Shown here: positions 2,090-40,498 of the stretch, in pieces | Position numbering within the stretch: position 1 is the first letter of the stretch | Layout of the letters: each line of letters starts with the position of its first letter | NCBI GenBank assembly: GCA_023334545.1 | Contig: JAADVB010000144.1 | Span: forward strand, 1 to 47,988 | Source of the DNA: Salisapilia sapeloensis CBS 127946 | Taxonomy: Eukaryota; Protista; Oomycota | Reading direction: 5' to 3' | Length of the DNA stretch: 47,988 nucleotides | Translations under genes and position numbers: made by a program | The notes under the pieces: generated by a model | Databases searched by the model: none | What the model was told of the DNA's origin: nothing | Seen by the model: only the letters and a program-made list of their open reading frames with translations

Positions 2090-5000
2090 ATGGCGGATGA
2101 TGCTCCTGCCAGTGATAAGCAGGAGGTAAATCCTCTTAAGTACATCGAGCAACGCGTTACGACGGCATTTGGTGGTGCTGGGAATGCCAAATTTGCAGCC
2201 AAATACGCGACAGAGAGCAACGAGTACGTTTCATACGATAGGACCTGTTCTCTTCATCTTTTGAACGCTTTAAATGTCACTGTAGGAACTGTCTAAAAGA
2301 GTTTATCGAGTTGGAAGATGTGATGATGCTTGTGTTTTCAGGAGATAATGTCGTGGCGTCGACCAAAATGCCATCGTCACTAGCGAAAGGGAAGACGATT
2401 AGTTTTACTAAAGTCCACAAGACACCGATAACGGCTAGTAACTTGCTTACCGACATGGTTGTGAATGAATTGACTGGGAATAATGTCGAGCATTTGGAAC
2501 GTGTCGTGGCCGAGCTATACCTTCCTCTCTTTTCCAATACGACGAATCAAGAAGGATGGGGAGAAGTTGCATCGAAGGAAGTGGTCGATAAATTCCATTC
2601 GTACATGGCAAATGTCAGTATCTTGAATGGTGCGACGAAAGGCGAGACGTGTTTACCACTTCCACCTGTGGATGGCAATGCTGCAAATTTAAGTAACAAG
2701 ATTTCGCTTTTAGAAGGATCGATCATTACGTGGACGAAACAGATTAAGAATGTGTTGAAGCAAGATCCGGAGGATTTATTAAAGCAAGGTATGCACCCGA
2801 CACCGGATAAAGAAATTGAGTTCTGGGTAACCAAAGCTGCGAATTTGAACTCGGTCTTTGACCAACTACAATCCAAAAAGGTTCGTAAGATCCTTACGGC
2901 ACTTGATCGATCCAAGAGTACATATTGTACGACGTTTGCTCGGTTATGTAAAGAAGTGTTTACTGCCCGTATTGAAGCGAATGATAATGTCAAGTACTTG
3001 CGGACGTTGGAAGAGTGGTTCATGCGTCTGAATAATGACGATGACTTCCCAGGGCTCACGGAGCTCTTTAAACCGATGCTACATATCATTCTTCTCATTT
3101 GGAAGAACTCGAAGCATTATAATACACCTGCTAGACTCGTTGTGCTCATTCGTGAAATATGCAATTCTCTTATAGAACAATCACGCAAGTACGTGAGTGG
3201 AGAGCTCATCTTCTCTCTTATTGAACAGGAAGAAGCTGGACAAGCAGTGGAACAACTCAAGACAACGTTGGAAGTCTGTAGTAACTTTAAAAGCACGTAC
3301 TTTGAATATAAGGCAACAGCAAATGCCGAGTGTCCGTCAAATCCATGGCGTATCCAAGGAAATGCTCTCTTTGCACGATTGGATTCGTTCTTAGAACGAT
3401 GCCATGACATTTTGGACTTGACACAGACGATCGTCCAGTTCAGCAAGTTGTCCAAGATTGAAGTTGGAGGTACGAAAGGCAAGTCACTTACAATGAGTGT
3501 CCAGCAGATCCACTCGGACTTTACTGACGCCGTGAACACGTTTAAAGTCGTGTCGAATGACATTATGGACGTCGGTGCTTCTCGATTTGATGATAACTTT
3601 TACGATTTTCGTTGTAAGATTAAAGAGCTTGAGCGTCGTCTGGGGTCTGTATTGACGCAAGGCTTTGACGATAGCTCGACCATCTTTGGTCGTTTCAAGC
3701 TCTTGGATTCGTTCGAAGGGCTACTTAACCGTCCGATCATTCAAGATGAACTGGAGAAGAAGCACGTTGCTCTCGTCCAAAGCTATGGACAAGACCTCAA
3801 GGTTGTGCAAGAGCTCTTTCTGCATAGTCGAGACGCACCTCCGATCAGTTGGAACCTCCCGCCTGTGGCTGGTGCACTGATGTGGTGTCGAGGCTTGATG
3901 GAACGCATTGAGCATCCGATGAAGAAGCTGAAAGAGTTGAATCAGAACGTGATGGAACGAGAGGAAGCGAAAGAAGTGTATAAAGTGTATACGACGATCA
4001 TAGCGTCGTTGCAAGAGTATGAGAATCAAAAGGTAGAAGAGTGGAGTCGAGATGTCGAGTCATCTTCCCAAGCGAAACTCAAGTTACCATTGCTCATTCG
4101 CAACAGTCAAACGAAAACGTTACGCTTAAATTTCGATCCGGCACTAGAAAAGTTGCTTCGAGAGATCAAGTACTTGCGTTTGATGAATATTGATATTCCA
4201 TTAACAGCGTTACAGATTTCAGAGAAAGAAGAGCTCTTCCGTCAGTATCGAAGTGACTTGGCATACATCGTCGGACCATACAATACGATGATTGAAGGCC
4301 TGCATCCGCTTGAAGAACCGCTTGTTCGTCGTCATATCAACGCAATTGATGCATGCGTCGGACGTGGCATTAATGACCTCAATTGGAATAGCTCTGGCAT
4401 CGAAACATTTATTGATGAGTGTCGTAAGGCAGTGGAGAATGCGAGTGAAATCGTGAGCAACTTGCAGGAGAATCTGAGCACGATCCAAGAGACGTTGAGC
4501 GCGTGGAATCACCCGCTGTTGGAACGACAGTCCAAGCCAGTCGCAGTGAATGAGCAAGAGCGACAGCATAAGAGCTATATTGTTCAACGCACTTTGAAAG
4601 TACGAGAAGGCGCGACGGAGATCCATCGTCGACTCAAGCAATCTCATACGAGCATCACTGGTGTCAATAGTGCCCAATGGAAGGGATACGTGGACTATGT
4701 GAATAACATTGTGGTATCTGGCCTCGCGCAAGCCATCAATGTCTCCCTCGAGTACCTTGCCAAACAGTTGGATCCACATGTAGGAGGCGGACACTCTGGC
4801 GAACGTGCCGCTGGTTCGAAAGGAGATCGTCTACCGATGCTTGAGATTAAGTTGGATTTAGTCGGCAAACGCGTGCAATTCAATCCGCACGTTGGTGAGA
4901 ATAACGGCAAAGGGCTGCGTGACATTGTCCAGCATTGGATCAACTCATTCTTTAGCATCGCAACGGTCGTCAAGCGCCTTGATTCGGACGAAGGTGGTAG

Positions 5001-8000
5001 TTACTTGCGAGAAATGCAGGCAGATATGGGCGTTTGTATGAACCTCGCGGTCATCAGTGACCATTTGCATGTGAACGAGAGTATGTTAGAAGAGTTCAAA
5101 TCACGATATGATAGCTATGCGTACTTGTGGGAGTCAGATATGACGACTGCATTTCAAGAGTTTCTTGAAAGTGCCAAGTATAAGACGGAGAACGAGACGG
5201 ACATGTTAGATTTGGACAAGTTCAATGCTGAAATGACCAAGTACGAACACATCGCTAGTGAAATCGATAATCTAGTCACACCTACGGACATTGGATGGCT
5301 GCGTGTCAACTCTCAGCCGATTAAAACGGCGATGCAGTCATGGGTTGGCAAGTGGATTTATCAGTACACTTTGTACCTTCATGAACACGTCGTGACGAAA
5401 CTACGTGACTTGCATGAGTTCATGGATACCGTGACGACAGGTCTAGATGAAGAGGTACATGAGAAGAATAAGGAAGCACTGATGCGTGTGATGACGCACA
5501 TACGTGACGTTCGGAAGAAGATGGAGTCTACGAATGAAGTCTTTGATCCGTTGCGAGAAACTGTTCATTTGCTTCGTAACCACGGCGTTAATGTCGAAGA
5601 CACCAAGGTCGCAGACAACTCTGTGCAAGATTACTTGGAGACAGCTCCGATGCAGTGGGAAGGTATAGTAAATAAAACGTTTAAAAAGAAGGAAGAGATC
5701 ATGCCACTCCAAATGTCTGAGGTCGAGTCGATTAAAGAGGATCTAGAGTCCTTCTACCTGGATATGCGCAAGTTTCGTAACGAGTTCCGATCGAACGCAC
5801 CGTTTGGTTTCCAAGGATCACCGGAAGAAGCGTATCATCAGATTGATGAATTTTCATCTGCTTTGAATGCAAAGATCGCTCAAGCGAAACAATTCAATGA
5901 GTTGGAAGAACTGTTTGAGCTACAAGTATCCAAGTATCAAGAGACGACGGATACGTTGTACGAGTTACAGCAAGTGAAGAAATGTTGGGATCTAAAAGAC
6001 CTTGTGCTTGGTACGTTTGAAGACTGGAAGTCAACACTCTGGACGAACATCCAGACGGATACGTTGGAGACACATGCACGTGCGTTTATGAAACAGCTCA
6101 AAATGGAAGCGAATGAGAATCAGATTATTAAACAATGGCAAGTGTATAAGGACATTGAACAGTTGGTGAAGAACATGTCGACGGTGTTGCCATTGATTAA
6201 CGACTTGCATTCTGAAGCGATGCAAGATCGACATTGGCGTGCTCTTTCGAACATTTGTAAAGTCAAAGCGATTGATCCGAAGGATCCCAAGTTCTCTTTT
6301 GCCGACTTGCTCAAGTTAAATCTACATTTGCATGTGGATGATGTCGGAGAGATCATCGAAACTGCGAATAAAGAGCAGAAGATTGAAAAGAAATTGACGA
6401 TGATTGAAGAGCTATGGCAGCGACTGACCCTAGAGTACGTTCCACATAAAGATTCTGGTACTTATGTGGTGAAACCTTCGGAAGAAGTGGTTGAGTCATT
6501 AGAAAACAATCAATTGGAGCTACAGACGATGATCGGGATGGGTAAGTTTGTCGAGTTCTTTAAAGACCGAGTCTTGGCGTCACAAAAGTCACTTGGACAT
6601 GTGGAAGAAGTATTGAAAGAGTGGGTATCTGTGTCTAAGCAATGGGCTTCATTAGAAAGTATCTTTCTCAGTTCTCCTGATATTCGGAATCAATTGCCGG
6701 ATGACACACGGACGTTCGAAACGATTGACTCAAACTTTAAAGATTTGATGAAGAATGCTATCCTAGAACCGAATGTCGTTTTATCCTGTTCCGTCGATAG
6801 TCGATTGGAAGCACTCAAGGAGATGACAGCGAACTTGGAAAAGTGTCAAAAGTCATTGAACGAGTATTTGGACAAGAAGAAGAAGATCTTCCCTCGCTTC
6901 TACTTCGTCTCGAACGTTGCTCTATTAGAGATTCTATCGAATGGTAATAATCCGAAGAAGATCATGCCGTTCTTAGGAGATTGCTATGACTCTCTCTGCA
7001 ATCTTATCTTTGAAGACGACTCTCCGAATACTGCCCATACGATGGTTGCAAAAGATAAAGAAACCGTGCGTCTACCAAAGATATTTGTTATGAGCGGAGC
7101 CGTGGAAAGTTGGCTGAACGATTTGACTGAGGCCATGCGCTATTGCATTCGAAAGGAGATGCATGACTCGATTGAGACGGCTGCGAATTGGGACGTCGAG
7201 AAACCTCGGCATCAGTGGCTCTTCGACTACCCTGCTCAAGTCGTTTTAAACGCAACGCAGATCTATTGGACGGAAGAGACCGAGTTGGCGTTGGAAGAGT
7301 TTGAAAATGGGCAGGAAGATGCTGTGAAGAGGTACCTTGGCGTATGCAACCAACGATTGGAGCATTTGATCAATCTCGTATTAGGTAGTTTGACAAACGC
7401 CGATCGATGTAAAATCATTGCACTCATTACTCTGGATGTGCATTCACGAGATGTTGTCAAGAAGTTGGTTGATGAAAAGGTAGAAGGACCACTAAGTTTC
7501 CTGTGGCAACAACAGCTCCGATTCATTTGGCGCCCTGAGAACTGGGACGTTGACATTCGAATCACAGACTTCCGATCCAAGTACTCGTATGAATGGATTG
7601 GAAATACTGGTCGTCTAGTGATCACTCCGTTAACGGACAGGTGCTATATCACGCTTACGATGGCTCTTCGACTCTTCCTCGGTGGAGCACCCGCTGGTCC
7701 GGCTGGTACAGGAAAGACGGAGACAACGAAAGACCTGGCACGTGCCATGGCGCTATGCTGCTATGTGTTCAATTGCTCCGATCAGATGAACTATCAGACC
7801 ATGGCAGATATCTTCCGAGGTCTATGTCAAACGGGTACTTGGGGCTGCTTTGATGAGTTCAATCGCATCAACATCGAAGTGTTGAGTGTCGTCGCGACAC
7901 AGGTGAAGACGATTCTAGATGCAGTTGTACTTAATGCCGTACCGGCGAATCGTGAGCCAGAGTATCAATCAATTCCAGCCGGAACGCCACCTGTCGTCGT

Positions 8001-11000
8001 CGGAGAGTTTGAGTTCATGGGCACATCGGATCGTATTACATTGATCCCGACGTGTGGTTTCTTCATTACGATGAACCCCGGATACGCCGGTCGAACGGAA
8101 CTTCCAGAGAATTTAAAAGTGCTTTTCCGATCTTGCGCGATGATTCGTCCGGATCTGCGTCCGATTTGTGAGAACATGCTCATGTCGGAAGGTTTCCAGC
8201 AAGCACGGACACTTGCCATTAAGTTCGTAACCTTATATCAGCTCAGTGGTGAGCTTCTGTCGAAGCAGTTCCATTATGACTGGGGTCTCCGAGCCGTGAA
8301 ATCCGTACTTCGAGTCGCAGGTATCTTGAAACGAGCGGAGCCTGACGTGGAGGAAGACAAGGTGCTGATGCGTGCTCTGCGTGACTTTAATACGCCTAAG
8401 ATTCCACAGCATGATACGCCGATCTTCCTACGTTTAATCAACGACTTGTTCATCGGTGTCGAAGTCGCACCGAAAGTGAATTTAGATTTACGAGAGAAAA
8501 CAGTTCAAGTGTGTAAAGAGAATAACTTGCAGCACGATGACTCATTCGTGCTCAAAGTGTGTCAGCTACAAGAGTTGATGGATGTCCGTCACTCTGTCAT
8601 GCTACTTGGTCCTGCTGGATGTGGCAAAACGACGACGTGGCAGGCGTTGGCCAAGTGCTGGAACTTGGGCCATGAAAAGAAAGTCTGCGTGTATGAAACG
8701 TTGAATCCGAAGGCAGTGACGTCGGATGAGTTGTACGGGTACATGACGTTATCCAAGGACTGGAAAGATGGCGTTCTGTCGATCATCATGCGTGGTATGT
8801 CGAAAAATTATTCGGAGCAAGGGTTCTACGAGTCTCAGTTTTACAAGTGGTCGATTTTGGATGGTGACATTGATGCCGTGTGGATTGAAAGTATGAATAC
8901 CGTGATGGATGATAATAAAGTCCTGACACTTGTGTCGAATGAACGAATTCCATTAAGTGATGCCATGCGTATGGTCTTTGAGATCAATTCGCTCAAGAAT
9001 GCGACACCTGCGACTGTATCTCGTGCCGGTATCCTGTTCATTAATGAGTTTGACATTGGATGGAGACCTTTCGTCGAGTCATGGATTGCTAAGCGAGAAG
9101 ATGAGATCGAACGAACATACTTGCCTGGACTCTTTGACAAGTACATTGATACGACGGCAGATCTTATGCGCAAGGGGTACAAGCAAGTGGCTCCAGTTCG
9201 GTTGATCAACCAAGCATCGACGATTTGCTACCTGTTGGAAGGGTTGTTTGCGACGATTCCGACGGAAAAGAAGAATCCAGAAGTGATCGAATCTCTCTTT
9301 GTCTTCTGTGCTACTTGGGCTTTCGGAGGTCCATTGATCTCGGACAAGAGTGTCGATTATCGTAAAAACTTTCACGAGTTATGGGTATCAACATTTACGA
9401 ACATCAAGTATCCAAAGGAAGGTCTTTGTTTTGACTATTTCTATAACCTCGAATCAGGTGAATTTGAAAGTTGGAATCAAAAGGTTCCGTCGTACGTGCC
9501 ATCAGCGATTGGAAATGGACCAGGTGAAACACCATTCGGATCGATTGTCATTAGCACCAATGATACAGTGCGTATGAGGTATCTAGTTGAAACGCTTGTG
9601 TCGAGACAACGACCGGCGCTACTGGTCGGTGGAAGTGGAACAGGAAAAACGACTATCCTTAAGAACTTTTTACGAGATCTGGATGAAGACATGCTGTTTT
9701 CTACGATCAACATGAACTACTATACGGACTCGTACAAGCTTCAGCAGCAGCTCGAGTCAGTGATTGACAAGCGATCAGGTCGCATGTTTGGACCACCAGC
9801 GACGAAGAAATTGATCTACTTTATTGATGATTTAAACCTTCCGTACATTGAGGAGTACGGGACACAAAACGCTTTAGCTTTGCTCCGTCAGCACATGGAC
9901 TACAGGACCTTGTTTGATCGTACGGACTTGGGTTTCCGAAAAGAGATTGTGGATGTTCAGTACCTTTCTGCGATGAATCCTACTGCTGGTTCCTTTATCA
10001 TTGACGAACGACTGCAAAGGCATTATGCGTTGTTCGCGTGTCTGATGCCAGGTGTAGAAGACTTGCGGACGATCTACGGTTCTCTCGTCAAAGGTCATCT
10101 TGAGAATAGCGGCTTTAACGCGACGATCAGTGCAAGCTACGAGTCCTTCGTCAACGCGTCGATCATGCTGCATGAAGAAATGGTAACCAAGTTCCTCCCG
10201 AGTGCTACAAAGTTCGTGTACAACTGGAACATGCGCGAGCTTTCGAACATTTTCCAAGGCTTTACACGAGCAAAAGGATCCTTCTTCCCATCAGTGCTTA
10301 GCACTGCTCGTCTTCTAGTACATGAATGCACTCGTGTGTTTTCAGATCGACTCGTGACAGAAGAGGATATTGCCAAGTTCCATGAACGTATCAAAGAGAT
10401 TTTCAAAAAAGCACTTCCAGAGGTAGATCAACCATCCCTGTTTGACGAAAAGCCTCCGAATGATGAAGCTGGTGTGTCTGTTAATATCTTCACGACCTTT
10501 GCGACACAAGTAGCGGGTGTCGATAGTGCCTACTTACCTGTCCCAAGTATGCTCAAACTGCACAAGGTGCTTGTGGAACAATTAGATGACTATAACACCA
10601 AGTACTCGATGATGAATCTCGAGCTCTTTGACAATGCTATGGAGCACGTCACACGTATCTGTCGAATCATCGGTAATCCAGGTGGGAATGCCATGCTCAT
10701 CGGTGTAGGTGGTAGTGGTAAACAGTCTCTATCTCGCTTAGCTGCCCACATCTGTGGCTTTGACGTCCGTCAACTTGCTATCACATCCAACTTCCGCATC
10801 GAAGACTTGAAAGAGAACTTGGCAGAAATGTTTAAGATTGCAGGTATCCAAGGCGTTCCTCTCGTGTTCCTGATCACGGATTCCCAGATCGTAAATGAAC
10901 GCTTCTTGGTTTATATCAACGATATGCTATCGTCTGGATGGATCCCCGACTTGTTCCCGAAAGAAGACATTGATGCACTCTTAGGCTCGTTGCGTGGAGA

Positions 11001-14000
11001 AGCCAAGGCGAACGGTGTGCCTGATGCGCCAGATGCGTTAATGGACTTTTTGCTCCTACGCATTCGTCAGAACTTCCGTATCGTCATGTGCTTCTCACCT
11101 GTGGGATCGGTCTTCCGTGTACGTGCTCGAAGGTTCCCAGGTCTTGTCAATTGTACTGTCATTGATTGGTTCCATCCATGGCCAAAGGAGGCACTTGTAC
11201 GTGTCGCCTCGAGCTTTATTGAAAAGATGGAGGACGTAGGCGATGCACCTTTGCAACAAAGTTTGGCGATGCATATGGCTGATGTTCACATCTCAGTGAC
11301 GGAGATGAGTAAAAAATACTTTGAAACCCAACGCCGGTACAATTACGTGACGCCCAAGAGTTTCTTGGAGCTCATTAGTTTCTACGAAGTCTTGTTAAAA
11401 CATAAGAAAGAGGACATTCAGCGTCAGATCAATCGTCTCGACGACGGACTGTCGACCTTACGAAAGACATCGGCGGACGTCGCTGAGTTACAAGTCGATT
11501 TGAAACATACTATGGCCAAGGTAGCAGAGAAGCAGGCTTCCACGGATGTGTTGCTGGAGCAGATTGGTCGAGAGAAAGCCGCAGCACAGATCCAGGAAGA
11601 AAATGCGAATGAAGAAAAGGTAAAGGCAGAGGCGGCGAGTGATGCAGCTGCGAAGCTTGCGGCGGAAGCAGAGACGGAACTGAGTGCTGCGAAACCTGCA
11701 ATGGATGCCGCTGCTGCTGCTGTCGATTGTCTATCCAAGGCAGCTATTACGGAATTAAAGAGTTTACCGAAGCCTCCTGCAGGTGTAGATAACGTAACGA
11801 AAGCATGTTTAATTCTAGTCGAGAAAGAGTATAAGAACCACAAGTGGGATCGAGCGAAGAAGATGATGAATAATGCAGGTGCGTTCTTAGAAGCGCTGAA
11901 AGTGTTTAAAGGAGAAGATATTCCGGAAGCAGATATTGCACGTATCGAACCGTTGATAGCTGATCCGGAATTCACGGCGGAGAAGATGACGTCAAAGAGT
12001 TTTGCTGCAGCAAACCTTTGTTCATGGGTCGTGAACATCTATACGTTCAATCGTATCTATGTACGTGTGAAGCCACTGATGGATGCACTCGAAGCGTCTA
12101 AGCAAAGCAAGGCAGAAGCCGAGGAGCAACTAGCTAAGGTCATGGCACAAGTGGCAGAAGTCCAGAAACGACTGCAAGCGTTGGCTGATACGCTTCAGGA
12201 AGCGACGGAGGAGAAGCTCAAGGTGGAAGAGATGAAGGAAGCTTGTGAGAATCGATTGATGCTAGCTGGAAAGCTTGTGAATGGTCTTGCGAGTGAAAAT
12301 GAACGATGGGGTGTTGAAATTGAACAATTGAAAAACTCTGGTGTCATGGTCGTTGGCAACTCACTTCTCGCAGCAGCGTTCGTTTCGTACATTGGTGCGT
12401 TCGACCAGTCTGTGCGAAAGGAGTTGTGGCAAGAAACGTGGTATCCGGACTTAGTTGCGAAGAATATTCCTATCACGGAAGGCATTGATCCGTTAACCAT
12501 GTTGACGAGTGAAGGGAAGAATGCCAAGATGATGAGTGAAGGCTTACCGGCCGATCGAATTTCGATTGAGAACGGAGCGATTATTACGAGTTGTAAGCGC
12601 TGGCCTTTGGTCATTGATCCACAGCTGCAAGGCATCAAGTGGCTTCGTGAGAAGGAGAAAGATCGTGGCCTTGTCGTGATGCAGTTGAATCAAAAAGACT
12701 GGTTGCGGAAGATGGAGTCGGCGATTGTGAATGGCACAGTTATCATCATTGAGAACTTGAATGAAGACATTGATGCGACACTCGACCCTGTGCTTGGTCG
12801 CGCAGTCTACAAGAAAGGATCCAACTTGTTCCTAAAACTTGCTGGTGAAGAAGTGCAGTATGATCCTAACTTTTTCATGTACTTACAGACCAAGTTATCG
12901 AATCCGCATTATAAGCCAGAAATAGCTGCGCAATGTACGCTGATTAACTTTATTGCGACAGAGAGTGGTTTGGAAGATCAGTTGCTTGAGAAAGTAGTAA
13001 AGAAGGAGCAGCCAGAGCTAGAGCAACAGAAGCAAGATCTTGTTTTAGCGTTCCAAAAGTTTAAGATTGATCTCGTTGAACTTGAAGACCAGTTGCTCGA
13101 ACGTCTTGCAAATGCACCGGATGACATTCTTAGTGATGTACCGCTGATTGAGAGTCTAGAGGAGACGAAGAAGAAGGCGACGGACATTTCGATTTCAGTG
13201 AAGAAGAATCAAGAGACGGAGATTATTATTAATAACACAAGAGAGCTATATCGACCTGTAGCAGCAGAAGGAGCGATGCTTTACTTTTTACTCACGACAC
13301 TCAGTGCTATTGATCACATGTATCGCTACAGTCTCGACTCGTTCATCACGTTCTTCTACAATGCCATCGACCGAGCTGTCGTAAGTGACGTACAAGCTGA
13401 GCGTATGCTCAACCTTCGCGAGTCACTTCGAATCACGATCTACACGTGGGTTTCTCGTGGTCTCTTCGAAGCACATAAGCTCATCTTCTTAGCTCAGCTC
13501 ACGTTTAATCTCATGAGACGAGGGATCTTGGGTGACGATTATCGTGTACAGGAAAGCTACATGCAGTTCCTCTTGCGTGGTCCGAGCAAGACACCGACGG
13601 GGGAGTTGGAAGCGAATCCGATCGAATGGCTACCGAACGCTCAATGGGTAGCTATCAACGGTCTCGCTGCCTTGGAAGAATTCCAACGCATGCCACAGGA
13701 CATCAAGGAAGCGTCTTCACGCTTCCGAGAATGGTACAATCATCCGATGCCGGAAGCGGAGAAGTTGCCGTTGGATTGGGCGGCATTGGATCGAACACCA
13801 TTCTTAAAGATGCTCGTCGTTCGCTGCATGCGTCCAGATCGTATGACTGTGACCGTGAAAGAGTTTATTCGTCAAGTTCTACCGAATGGAAGCAACTACT
13901 GCGACTGTGACTCAGCGTTGAACTCGATTCAGGTGATGGATAGCTCGTACTTGGACTCGACACCAACGACGCCACTCTACTTTATCCTCTCTCCTGGTGC

Positions 14001-15753
14001 AGATGTTGTCGGTGGAGTCGACAAGTTGAGTGTCAAGTACGGATTCGAACGAGGTGTGAGTTACCACAACGTTTCCATGGGTCAAGGGCAAGATGTGTTT
14101 GCCATGGATCGTCTTGAAGTAGCACATCGAAACGGACATTGGGTCATTCTGAATAACATTCATCTCATGCCTCGGTGGCTTATCGCTCTCGAGAAAAAAC
14201 TGGATGAATTTGCTCTCGAAGGTTCGCATAAGAACTTCCGTCTCTTTTTAACGTCCGATCCATCGAACTCGATTCCGATCGGTGTACTAAATCGATGTAT
14301 TAAGCTTACGAATGAACCTCCTTCGGGATTAAAAGCGAATCTCAAGCGTGCGTTCGTAAGTTTCTCGAAAGAGTACATTGATGAAGCAGAAGGAAAAATT
14401 AAGTCGATCCTCTTTGGACTCTGTCATTTCCATGCTGTGCTTATGGAACGGAAGATGTACGGTCCACTCGGTTATAACATGATGTATCCCTTCTCGCTCG
14501 GAGATCTACGTGACTCTTCTGTGTGTTTGCAGAATTACATGGAGAATTCAGCAGGTGGTAAGATCCCGTGGGCTGACCTTCGCTATATCTTTGGTGAAAT
14601 CATGTATGGTGGACACATTGTCAATGATTTTGATCGACTCATGGCGAACACGTATCTGGATTACTTTATGCGAGATGAATTGTTGGATGAGATGGAGATG
14701 TTCCCGTTTGTTGAAGATGAAAAAGGTCCGTCGTTCATGAGTCTTCCTCCGTCGTCCTATGACAAGTATCTCGAGCACATTGAGACAGAGCTCAAGACCG
14801 ATTCGCCACTAGCCTTTGGGCTACATCCGAATGCTGAGATCGACTTCCGGACGACACAGAGTGAGAACTTGTTCCGTACGTTGATGGAGCTGCAGCCACG
14901 AGATGCAAGCGCAGGAGATGCCGGTATGAGTCCATTGGACCTAGCCAAAGCAGCGGTTGAGATGGTCATGTCTCGAGTAGGTGAAAAGAAGTTTGATTGT
15001 GATGAAATTGCTCGTGGGTTAGAAGAAGTTGGGCCGTATCAGAACGTTTTCTTACAAGAATGTGAGACGATGAATGTGCTACTAGCCGAGATCGTACGCT
15101 CTTTGAATGAACTTCAACTTGGCTTCGCAGGTGAATTGACCATGTCGGATGCCATGGAAAGTATACAAGAAGCACTTTTCCTCGACCGTGTGCCAAAGTC
15201 ATGGGAAAAGCTCGCGTTCCCATCACTACGTCCGCTTGCTTCGTGGTTGACGAATCTCGAACAACGTCTACAGCAATTGGATGAATGGACGCAGAATCCG
15301 ATGGATATCCCTCGCGTGACCTGGCTGTCAGGTCTCATCAACCCACAGTCCTTCCTCACGGCCATCATGCAGGTAACAGCGCAAAGGAACCAATGGGAAC
15401 TCGATAAGCTCGTCATTCAGACGGACGTCATGAAGCGCAAGGCTGGAGAGATGGACGCTTCTTCACGTGATGGAGCGTACATCTACGGTCTTTCGCTCAT
15501 GGGAGCGCGATGGGACGTTATGAACAACACAGTGGATCGATCGAATCCTCGCGAGATGTCGTGTCCGATGCCAGTGATCAACTGCAAAGCTGTCGCAGCA
15601 GAGAAGCTCGATGTCAAGGGATGCTACGTGTGTCCGTGCTACAAGACCGAGTCACGTGGTCCGACGTACGTCTTCTCTGCACAGCTTCGATCCAAGTCCT
15701 CACCAGCGAGGTGGGTGCTAGCAGGCGTCGCATTGGTCATGGACGTGGTTTAA
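2090..15753 (+). CDS. Axonemal outer-arm dynein heavy chain, beta-type (Chlamydomonas ODA4 / DNAH9-11-17-like); exons 2090-2223 and 2286-15753
   Basis: The 4480-aa ORF has four P-loops (GPAGTGKT, GPAGCGKT, GGSGTGKT, GVGGSGKQ), CFDEFNRI, a stalk coiled coil and C-terminal RGPTYVF...WVLAGVAL. Intron 2224-2285 joins an upstream ATG exon in frame. Beta-type assignment comes from remembered AAA1 and C-terminal sequence. Confidence 0.96.
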
Positions 15754-38164: not shown

Positions 38165-39244
38165 TTATTTCATTTCTACACTCGAATGGAGTGCCCCGAA
38201 TAAAAAGTCGATCGCCGTGTCGTACACGTGCGTCGGTCGAGACGTATAATGTTCACCTTGTACCTTTTGGATCATACTCGGACCTTTGTACTTATTCGCG
38301 AGCTGTTCGCTATGATGCCCATGGACGTATTTGTCGTCATGACCGGTGAGGAAGAGAGCAGGGAGGAGACAGAACGGAACTAATTCGATCGGACGGATGC
38401 GATCGAGGTCGACGTCCGTACGTTTCTTGACACTCTTCTCGACGAAGATGGTGGCAGCTCGAAAGACTGCGGATGGAACGTCGAAACCTTCTTTCTTGAT
38501 GCTACTCATAAGCTCCTGCACGAGCTTAGTCATGGTCGCGTAGCCGCCATCTAGTACCATCCCTTTAATAGGTTTCTCGATCGATAGAAGCTCGGGACGA
38601 CGAAAGGAGGCAGGAAGACTCTGCAGCTTTTTACGCTGCTTGGCGTCACGTGTGGTGGCAACGACGTTGGCAATGGCTGGGTACGTTCCCATGCTATGTG
38701 CATAGAAGCAGAAGGACTTCACGCTCGGGTCTTTGTCTAGATGCTCTAGTACCGAGTGCAAGTCCGTCGCTTCGTTCCATCCCATGGTCACGAAGAGCCC
38801 ATCGGACTGTCCGGAACCGGAGAAATCAAAGGCAAAAACGGACATGCCTCTGTCGAGAGCTTGGTCTCGAACACGCAAGGCATCGACACGGCTGCCGAGG
38901 TTCGAGTGCAAGTAGACGAGGCATGGAGCTGCCGTGGGCGATGTCGCCGAGGTATCGAATAATTGCCAATAGGAGCACTCGATTTTCAAGTCGCGTTCAT
39001 TGAGCAGGGTCAAGTCTTTCCGACGTGCCTCTTGGCCGTTGTCAAGACCGATGGTCGTGTCACCCAAGTCGGCGACGTCATAGACGCATCGCGGCGGTCG
39101 AATGACCGATGAAATCATGTCGTTGTATGTATCTGCGACATACTTTTGGATACTATCATCACCAGCAGCTCCTTTCTTCTTGAGCTCTTGCTCGAGCTCA
39201 CCTTCTTCAAATATCTCGATTTGCGAGGAACCTCCACTACCCAT
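38165..39244 (-). CDS. Alpha/beta hydrolase, probably N-myristoylated
   Basis: N-terminus MGSGGSS; VYLHSNLGSR, FDFSGSG.SDG, nucleophile elbow AHSMG, Asp in GHDDKYV and His in GEH. Confidence 0.85.
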   Translation of the reverse strand: MGSGGSSQIEIFEEGELEQELKKKGAAGDDSIQKYVADTYNDMISSVIRPPRCVYDVADLGDTTIGLDNGQEARRKDLTLLNERDLKIECSYWQLFDTSATSPTAAPCLVYLHSNLGSRVDALRVRDQALDRGMSVFAFDFSGSGQSDGLFVTMGWNEATDLHSVLEHLDKDPSVKSFCFYAHSMGTYPAIANVVATTRDAKQRKKLQSLPASFRRPELLSIEKPIKGMVLDGGYATMTKLVQELMSSIKKEGFDVPSAVFRAATIFVEKSVKKRTDVDLDRIRPIELVPFCLLPALFLTGHDDKYVHGHHSEQLANKYKGPSMIQKVQGEHYTSRPTHVYDTAIDFLFGALHSSVEMK

Positions 39245-39394
39245 CTCTACTTGTCTTCACGTTCTGCTGGAAGGGATGATGATGACGACGATGCTTCTCG
39301 AATTTTGACCAATCTAACATTCTAAAATTACTTTATAGCCAATGAAATATCTGATATAAATATCACACTTGAATTAGTCATTTCATACTTGAAT

Positions 39395-40082
39395 ATGCTA
39401 TTTGGAGGTACTCGTCGACTATTCCACTCGACGCGACGTGCTGCGTTCATTTTACGCAACCCAGGCGATGCGTCTGTTGCGACAGTGGAAAATGCGGCGG
39501 CGGAAAACATGACAAGTCGGTACGTTTGCAACATAAAAGATGGTTTTGTATGTATGAAGTGGAATCGAATGATCATGCGGATGTAGTCGAGTCATTAGCC
39601 GCAGTGATGGCATGGGCTTCTCGATGCAGCAGGAAATCTTCCGCAAGGATACCCCCGTCCGACTAGACTTTCGCAATCACGTCTACGCATTGACCGTGAC
39701 GCAAGGTCATGGCGAAGTGCGATTGCTCGAGACGCGTGGTGGTGCCGGAGGGAAGGCGCAGGATATCCGAGAAGGATCGACCATTGCACTCAGTGCTTCC
39801 ACTGTCATTGAAGTCATTGCCAAGTCGGACGAGCTGCACGCTGTCAGGTAGATTTGTTTGCGCATACAAGATACGAAGGTGGGCTAAGATTTTTTATGCA
39901 GCGTCATGAACCCTCCTCTTGTCGGCAGCGAAGAGCTAAATGAAGATGGAGTATTCCCAGCAGCTGATGAAGACGGCACGGAACTAAGCAGTTACGACCG
40001 TAGTGCATTGCGTCGATTGATGGACCCTCCAGAGTCGCTGAAAGCAGGCACTCAGCCCATGAAAGATCATCCATTTTTCTAG
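39395..40082 (+). CDS. ectC-like: Ectoine synthase (EctC)-like cupin with mitochondrial-type presequence and substituted iron ligands; exons 39395-39519, 39587-39847, 39902-40082 (188 aa)
   Basis: Two GT..AG introns (39520-39586, 39848-39901) give an open frame: MLFGGTRRLFHSTRRAA-FILRN...TSRRVISRSDGMGFS...DFRNHVYAL..GHGEV...IREGSTIAL...SVMNPPLVGSEELNEDGVFP. This aligns collinearly with remembered EctC IVR...SRRL...DGMGFS...YKNHLEAVY..GEGE...PGT.YAL...CVFNPPLTG.E...EDG.YP. Confidence 0.85.
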
Positions 40083-40498
40083 TCCAGTAGCGTAGACATA
40101 GACATCTTTATGGCAAACGCTCGATTCCAAGTCATACCAAGTGATCTCTACTTTTATGTTCTCTCTTTCTCATACCAAGGTCGGACATCGTCCTATTGGC
40201 AAACTCGCTCTTCAAAGTCGGAGAGTACGTTCTGAATTTCCATGTGCGTTCGTGAAAGGTAGAAGGAAGGATAGAAAGCCATGTTGTTTCACAGACGACT
40301 ACTCAATCTGGATCCACTCGACTCTTATTAGCCTGTCTACATACCATTCTCTGCCATGTAGAACGAGGACTGTCGTGTACAGTTACAACTTGTGATTTCC
40401 TTCCGCGGCTGTATACTACTGGCCATTCTCCTACTTGATTCCAACCTCCAATATCACTTGCGGTCCGTCTCCACCCTGCCATAGCTGGTTTACAAACG

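Follow-up and report, generated by a model that had tools for sequence, protein, structure and literature searches.

An EctC-family cupin without the ectoine synthase iron triad in Salisapilia sapeloensis and other oomycetes

Oomycete proteins of the EctC family are labelled "L-ectoine synthase" in both UniProt and NCBI. One gene of this family lies in the 47,988-bp contig JAADVB010000144.1 of Salisapilia sapeloensis CBS 127946, the whole of which is referred to as the window. The first-pass annotation of the locus held that the encoded protein appears to have lost all three iron ligands of EctC while its fold and pocket remained under selection, and raised the possibility of a pseudo-enzyme or an ectoine-binding sensor. 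The question is hence what this gene encodes: a working ectoine synthase, a binding protein, an enzyme with a new substrate, or a relic of a lost pathway. A single sentence in Harding et al. (2016) states that oomycetes carry either EctA or EctC (PMC4987115). In the literature searched, no paper links ectoine synthase with "pseudoenzyme" or "mildew", and none describes the missing catalytic core, the conserved tail, or a descent from stramenopile mitochondrial EctC.

Gene structure, transcript and neighbourhood

The EctC-family cupin gene consists of three exons encoding a protein of 188 amino acids (Table 1). The three-exon model is directly demonstrated rather than inferred, since spliced RNA contigs skip both introns in all four runs compared with the region. 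The 5′ ends of RNA contigs fall at 39378–39411, and the contigs splice out of 39518/19. At the other end, the X3 contig terminates at 40142 and the X6 contig at 40140, where the latter continues into AAAAA followed by adapter; an A-run and adapter at this point indicate that the mRNA is polyadenylated.

The X5 and X6 runs, labelled as another organism (B), contain a variant mRNA, which covers 39388–40140, is about 3.5% divergent, and has both introns spliced identically. Its 20 coding differences comprise 14 synonymous and 6 nonsynonymous substitutions, none of them in the motifs discussed here, and the dN/dS ratio between the window gene and the variant is 0.13. Its source is probably the parasite within host tissue, represented there by a sister species or a related strain.

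Table 1. Features of the EctC-like locus, in window coordinates
Feature	Position	Strand	Details
Alpha/beta-hydrolase gene	38165–39244	−	Divergent neighbour of the EctC-like gene
EctC-family cupin gene	39395–40082	+	Three exons, 188 aa
Exon 1	39395–39519	+	Codons 1–41 and two bases of codon 42 (translation); predicted mitochondrial presequence (residues 1–17), then first cupin strand
Intron 1	39520–39586	+	67 nt, GT..AG, phase 2, within the Arg42 codon
Exon 2	39587–39847	+	Cupin core with all three former iron-ligand positions (Pfam PF06339 and PDB alignments)
Gln56-Gln57-Glu58	39627–39635	+	Gln56 and Glu58 stand at substrate contacts Asn38 and Thr40
Tyr75 (TAC), motif NHVYAL	39684–39686	+	At iron ligand Glu57; gapless alignment to 5onm
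Ile108 (ATT)	39783–39785	+	At iron ligand Tyr84 (P. lautus) / Tyr85 (S. alaskensis)
Ile116 (ATT)	39807–39809	+	At iron ligand His92 (P. lautus) / His93 (S. alaskensis)
Intron 2	39848–39901	+	54 nt, GT..AG, phase 2, within the Ser129 codon
Exon 3	39902–40082	+	Last cupin strand, NPP turn, lid, conserved C-terminal extension
C-terminal extension	39957–40079	+	Residues 148–188, in exon 3
Stop codon (TAG)	40080–40082	+	End of exon 3
3′ UTR	40083–40140	+	Poly(A) addition site near 40140

In the window, the EctC-like gene lies between a hydrolase gene and an ABCG transporter gene. The start codons of the EctC-like gene and the divergently transcribed alpha/beta-hydrolase gene are separated by about 150 bp (39245–39394), and the 5′ ends of their RNA contigs by about 90 bp, pointing to a bidirectional promoter common to both genes. 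In Phytophthora, the order is Hydrolase_4, RabGAP, EctC-like, ankyrin, and MYCBPAP, so that the Hydrolase_4 gene is near the EctC-like gene and not adjacent to it; in Saprolegnia and Achlya, the neighbours are Myb and CFAP74. Synteny of the window gene is absent with Saprolegnia and of an ordinary local kind with Phytophthora (Hydrolase_4 close by). A functional gene cluster was considered and rejected, as the neighbourhoods in the window, in Phytophthora, and in Saprolegnia and Achlya share only ordinary local synteny. No ectA or ectB was found in the window or within 6–8 kb of the gene in P. sojae, P. nicotianae, and S. diclina. A scan for bacterial promoters and terminators returned nothing, and is irrelevant to a eukaryotic gene. 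Elsewhere in the window, a single open reading frame of 4480 codons (2311–15753, plus strand) would encode a giant protein.

Homology, fold and the former iron site

The homology to EctC is not a matter of chance, since exon 2 alone scores 33 bits against Pfam PF06339 (Ectoine_synth; gathering threshold 27 bits) and the full orthologue from P. nicotianae (P0001) scores 69.5 bits. Two other full orthologues, P0008 and P0009, reach 87.4 and 86 bits, respectively, and membership in the PF06339 homology family is clear. The more specific NCBIfam model NF009806, "ectoine synthase", has a cut-off of 128 bits; the bona fide EctC P0013 scores 132.7 bits against it, and the full-length oomycete proteins stay below the cut-off, at 71.4 to 95.9 bits.

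In a phmmer comparison with the PDB, exon 2 aligns without gaps to EctC of Paenibacillus lautus (PlEctC; 5onm), with Tyr75 opposite Glu57. A profile of the oomycete family matches the structures of EctC from Sphingopyxis alaskensis (SaEctC; 5bxx, E-value 4e-23) and of PlEctC (5onn, about 1e-21); in this alignment, the GSTIALSASTVI stretch (G-S-T-I-A-L-S-A-S-T-V-I) is gapless against the solved EctC structures. MAFFT alignments yield the same residue equivalences as the profile and phmmer.

The structural comparison was made with the AlphaFold model of the P. nicotianae orthologue, standing in for the window protein, to which it is 51% identical over the full length and 58% over the exon-2 region. 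The core of the model has a pLDDT of about 90. Foldseek superposes it on 5bxx with a TM-score of 0.91 (by target) and an rmsd of 1.8 Å over about 120 columns, at about 30% identity. Membership in the EctC fold, as judged by superposition on solved EctC structures, is thus established via the orthologue model, and given this superposition a register shift is unlikely. The ESM Atlas look-alikes of the same orthologue all fall into generic clusters of cupins or EctC. In the AFDB cluster search, the matches beyond rank 4 are likewise generic cupins, and the rank-2 row pointed to the comparison with Cafeteria described below.

All three iron ligands are replaced. The phmmer, profile, and MAFFT alignments agree in placing Tyr75, Ile108, and Ile116 at Glu57, Tyr84/85, and His92/93. 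The first-pass annotation, which had read the loss from a manual alignment, was therefore correct on this point, as it was on the retention of the fold. The translation also bears out the motifs that it listed, namely NHVYAL with the TAC codon of Tyr75, the retained SRR, GFS, and NH, and the C-terminal KDHPFF. In PlEctC, alanine at any single iron ligand leaves 5–15% of activity (PMC6344544), the corresponding range in SaEctC being 8–23% (PMC4795551), and these single-ligand mutants also lose most of their iron (PMC6344544, PMC4795551). Moreover, Czech et al. found that the iron-contacting residues vary in none of 582 EctC-type proteins, orphans included (PMC6344544).

The losses extend beyond the triad. 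Widderich et al. listed 13 residues that are strictly conserved across 440 EctC-type proteins (PMC4795551). Six of these are kept in the window protein (His55, Gly64, Leu87, Pro109, Gly113, and Glu115), all of them with a structural role or a place in the His55-Pro109-Glu115 network, by which the C-terminal lid is positioned (PMC4795551). The remaining seven are replaced (Thr40 by Glu, Tyr52 by Phe, Glu57 by Tyr, Tyr85 by Ile, His93 by Ile, Phe107 by Met, and His117 by Leu), and every one of them is a metal, substrate, or product residue. Among the five ectoine contacts of PlEctC, only Ser23 is retained, the others being changed as Asn38 to Gln, Tyr52 to Phe, Glu57 to Tyr, and Phe106 to Met; among the six substrate contacts, only Arg25 is retained. 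Ser23 and Arg25 correspond to Ser41 and Arg43 of the window protein, and there is no Trp at position 21. At the exon 1–2 junction (39509–39519 / 39587–39590), the window protein carries a three-residue insertion, E-N-M-T-S-RR compared with E-T/S-RR in all other oomycetes. The insertion is confirmed by spliced RNA and sits exactly at the place of the EctC substrate contact Trp21, beside a conserved intron.

A comparison with bona fide EctC (5bxx/5by5 from S. alaskensis and 5onm/5onn/5ono from P. lautus) thus reveals the same cupin fold and Pfam family, with the lid-positioning network, Gly64, Leu87, Gly113, and Arg25 in common. In contrast, the oomycete protein has Tyr/Ile/Ile in place of the triad, lacks Trp21, Asn38, Thr40, Tyr52, Phe106, and His117, and adds a presequence, a C-terminal extension of about 40 residues, and introns. 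By its Fe(II) triad and its substrate contacts, it does not qualify as a functional ectoine synthase (EC 4.2.1.108). By homology and fold the window protein belongs with EctC, but it falls outside the functional enzyme class. The database label is probably wrong for the oomycete proteins as a group, because the iron site and most substrate contacts are lost, and the residues present make ectoine synthesis by these proteins very unlikely.

Conservation and origin of the oomycete family

About 35 oomycete orthologues were recovered, bearing automatic names such as "L-ectoine synthase", and all of them lack the triad. They come from the genera Phytophthora, Plasmopara, Bremia, Peronospora, Hyaloperonospora, and Peronosclerospora, as well as Pythium, Globisporangium, Saprolegnia, Achlya, and Thraustotheca. 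When exon 2 was compared exhaustively with 1.84 billion representatives by phmmer, 15 matches resulted in total; the window protein itself was not among the entries returned by this or by word-indexed searches. Every tail-bearing match that can be traced to an organism is from an oomycete, and several others are from assemblies without an organism name; the remainder are two ligand-intact EctC proteins and some long proteins in which nothing but short repeats aligned. The small number of matches and the oomycete origin of the traceable tail-bearing ones suggest that the family is essentially restricted to oomycetes.

Position-by-position variation was read from about 20 aligned family members. 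Position 57 is occupied by Tyr, Phe, Cys, or Gln, position 84/85 by Phe, Val, or Ile, and position 92/93 by Ile, Val, Phe, Ala, Met, or Leu, with His in P0009 alone. Since these positions are variable and hydrophobic in about 20 orthologues, they do not form an alternative conserved site; in particular, Tyr75 is not a conserved replacement ligand, as orthologues have Phe, Cys, or Gln there. Nor is any His or Cys conserved, among the 20 members, at the inward-facing positions known from EctC, these positions being assigned from published EctC structures rather than from model coordinates. The exceptional member, P0009 (L002, a Logan contig of SRR17242359), carries the tail and has Gln57 and Phe84 but keeps His92, and is possibly an intermediate in the loss of the iron site.

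The opposite side of the pocket is conserved. Arg25, Gln38, Ser104, Asp31, Asn54, and His55 are invariant in the 20 aligned members; thus, Gln38 (Gln56 of the window protein) is Gln in 20/20, whereas position 40 (Glu58) is Glu in 19 and Asp in one, and Ser23 is replaced by Thr in Peronosporales. The conserved side, formed by Ser/Thr23, Arg25, Gln38, Glu40, and Ser104, is that of the amino-acid head group, while the former metal side is hydrophobic and varies among orthologues. Hence, the proposal that the pocket is under selection holds for its head-group side and fails for its metal side. The conserved Glu58, Asp123, and Glu124 might conceivably provide a new, carboxylate-based site.

The dN/dS ratios are 0.06, 0.16, and 0.19 in three Phytophthora pairs and 0.11 between Saprolegnia and Achlya, which agrees with the purifying selection anticipated in the first-pass annotation; neutral decay is not seen. 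Intron 1 coincides in position and phase with the single intron of three Phytophthora genes, and intron 2 with the single intron of Saprolegnia and Achlya. Therefore, the two-intron gene is older than the split of these orders. The present pattern is one of complementary intron loss: the window gene keeps both ancestral introns, Phytophthora retains only the first, and Saprolegnia and Achlya retain only the second.

The best-conserved part of the oomycete protein is the tail of about 40 residues that follows the lid. Mean pairwise identity among orthologues is 62% in the tail and 81% in its last 17 residues, compared with 55% in the core (barrel), and the conserved end reads PMKD[DH]P[LF]F. 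The pLDDT of the tail in the P. nicotianae model is about 50–56; a value this low may stem from the small depth of the alignment (38 rows) and need not mean real disorder.

The tail is not an oomycete novelty, as had been supposed: an EctC from Cafeteria with intact Glu, Tyr, and His carries the same extension. This protein (P0065, MMETSP) was recovered in a search seeded with the marine eukaryotic EctC P0014. It keeps Trp21, Thr40, Tyr52, Glu57, Tyr84, and His92, and its extension aligns with the oomycete tail without gaps up to an SL-x-G-S motif, where the P0065 record ends. At the other terminus, the presequence motif R-x-[FL]-H-x-[ST] is common to the oomycete orthologues and P0014 (R-S-L-H-T-S). 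Residues 1–17 of the window protein are rich in Arg, Ser, and Thr and contain no acidic residue, and a mitochondrial location is predicted from this sequence. We take these residues to conform to the R-10 pattern R-x-F-x-x-T-x-x-x-x; a mature protein cut accordingly would begin at Phe18, which aligns with residue 2 of bacterial EctC.

The shared presequence motif and tail suggest that the oomycete protein descends from a stramenopile EctC that already bore both. On this comparison of sequences, the loss of the ligands came after the origin of the presequence and tail, and the EctC of Cafeteria and marine stramenopiles most likely represents the direct ancestor lineage. Bicosoecid EctC is mitochondrial, with EctA and EctB alongside (Harding et al., 2016; PMC4987115). 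Stramenopile EctC proteins (Cafeteria P0065, P0014 from a marine metagenome, and Halocafeteria; PMC4987115) resemble the oomycete proteins in the presequence, an enlarged Gly-rich loop, and the tail, but have EctA/EctB companions and keep the six residues listed above for P0065, all of which the oomycete proteins lost. Bacterial orphan EctC proteins, e.g., from Pseudomonas syringae and Burkholderia (Czech et al., 2018, 2019), are likewise encoded by ectC-like genes without ectA/ectB neighbours; however, they keep the iron-contacting residues (PMC6344544), and the oomycete clade does not. In a further arrangement, found in an ENA metagenome, a protein of 273 aa (P0060) joins two complete EctC domains in tandem, each with Glu/Tyr/His intact.

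Possible functions and their implications

With the ligands gone, the fold kept, and purifying selection acting, a pseudo-enzyme or a protein of new function is the right class of explanation, as the first-pass annotation had it. A decaying pseudogene, the relic of a lost ectoine pathway, might be suspected from the loss of catalytic residues in a gene that stands alone. This reading is refuted by the dN/dS ratios of 0.06–0.19, by frames that are intact in about 35 species from at least three orders, by expression as a spliced and polyadenylated mRNA, and by the shared introns, and the C-terminal motif is nearly invariant; we regard it as practically out of the question. A working ectoine synthase, or a hydrolase running in reverse, with alternative metal ligands would be in line with the database name and with the passed Pfam threshold, and Tyr75 and Glu58 are conceivable metal ligands. 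It is nevertheless highly improbable, given that Tyr75 is Phe, Cys, or Gln in orthologues, that no inward-facing His or Cys is conserved, that genuine EctC loses its iron and becomes almost inactive when a single ligand is mutated, that the family stays under the NCBIfam cut-off, and that ectA and ectB are not found nearby. The sensor proposed in the first-pass annotation would bind ectoine or hydroxyectoine in the old product site without catalysis. Retention of Ser41 (Ser23), Arg43 (Arg25), and the GFS and NH motifs speaks for it, but with only one of the five ectoine contacts left, the protein is unlikely to bind ectoine; that contact, Ser23, is itself Thr in Peronosporales, and oomycetes are reported, in the one mention within the literature searched, to carry either EctA or EctC and not the full pathway (PMC4987115). 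A sensor of this kind therefore seems distinctly improbable.

A metal-independent enzyme with a new substrate deserves more weight, although we consider it doubtful. Such an enzyme would use Arg25, Gln38, Glu40, and Ser104 for acid-base chemistry, e.g., cyclisation, hydrolysis, or isomerisation, and its substrate would resemble an amino acid with a hydrophobic side chain; metal-free cupins such as the RmlC-type epimerases are precedents by analogy. In its favour, Gln56, Arg43, and Ser129 do not vary in the family and Glu58 hardly does, and in PlEctC all four positions are turned towards the head group of the substrate; the network anchoring the lid is kept, and purifying selection is strong. 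Conservation of the polar cluster fits metal-free catalysis as well as it fits binding. However, the rest of the pocket varies (Y/F/C/Q, I/V/F, I/V/M/F/A/L, F/Y/L/M, and M/T/L/I/F at individual positions), as is seldom seen in an active site specific for one substrate; conservation is highest in the predicted-disordered tail and not in the barrel; and Phytophthora and Saprolegnia have no neighbourhood of metabolic genes in common.

We favour a binding or scaffolding role that involves the lid and the tail, because the tail is more constrained than the barrel and older than the loss of catalysis. On this view, the protein descends from stramenopile mitochondrial EctC, has neither a metal nor a part in ectoine metabolism, and acts as a binding module; we attach about even confidence to this reading. 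A mitochondrial ectoine synthase, acquired by stramenopiles from bacteria, would have given rise to the catalytically disabled oomycete descendant, which presumably binds no catalytic metal and makes no ectoine. The polar cluster at the mouth of the barrel (Ser/Thr23, Arg25, Gln38, Glu40, and Ser104) could hold a small carboxylate- or amine-bearing ligand above the hydrophobic cavity; alternatively, an Arg25-Glu40 salt bridge might shut the mouth. The lid and the conserved, probably disordered tail would contact a partner protein in the mitochondrion, a role that the ancestral enzyme would have had as its second function and that would have persisted when the ectoine pathway was lost. More specifically, and with clearly less confidence, the selected function might lie in the ancestral tail and lid, which would serve in partner docking or regulation or make the protein an accessory subunit of a mitochondrial complex. 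Such a function would be kept by all oomycetes, and the catalytic stramenopile EctC would already have been moonlighting.

Barrels that serve in binding or dimerisation rather than in metal catalysis are known among the non-enzymatic cupins, including the CENP-C/Mif2 dimerisation domain, auxin-binding protein 1, and the seed storage globulins. CENP-C cupins and auxin-binding protein 1 are found among the weaker fold matches of the orthologue model. These proteins have no specific sequence relationship to the oomycete protein and are analogies only.

These results have consequences for annotation. The genome paper on P. plurivora reports "enzymes for ectoine biosynthesis" predicted by antiSMASH (PMC6152947), and this prediction may rest on the oomycete EctC-like gene. 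Claims about compatible solutes in oomycete pathogens that are based on this gene should be dropped.

For the EctC family, a triad that is invariant in 582 bacterial and archaeal EctC-type proteins is absent from a whole eukaryotic clade, the members of which are strongly constrained. As a natural experiment, the oomycete clade can thereby show which roles are open to the scaffold, lid, and tail of EctC when catalysis is gone. Its likely route is now visible, leading from bacterial EctC via a stramenopile mitochondrial EctC with presequence and tail to the oomycete pseudo-EctC. The oomycete protein is small, soluble-looking, and encoded by a single-copy gene, so that its role is directly testable. 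If the selected function does lie in the tail and lid, major pathogens of plants and animals would possess a mitochondrial component specific to their lineage, and the protein would clearly exemplify how an enzyme can survive in nature on a second function once its pathway is gone.
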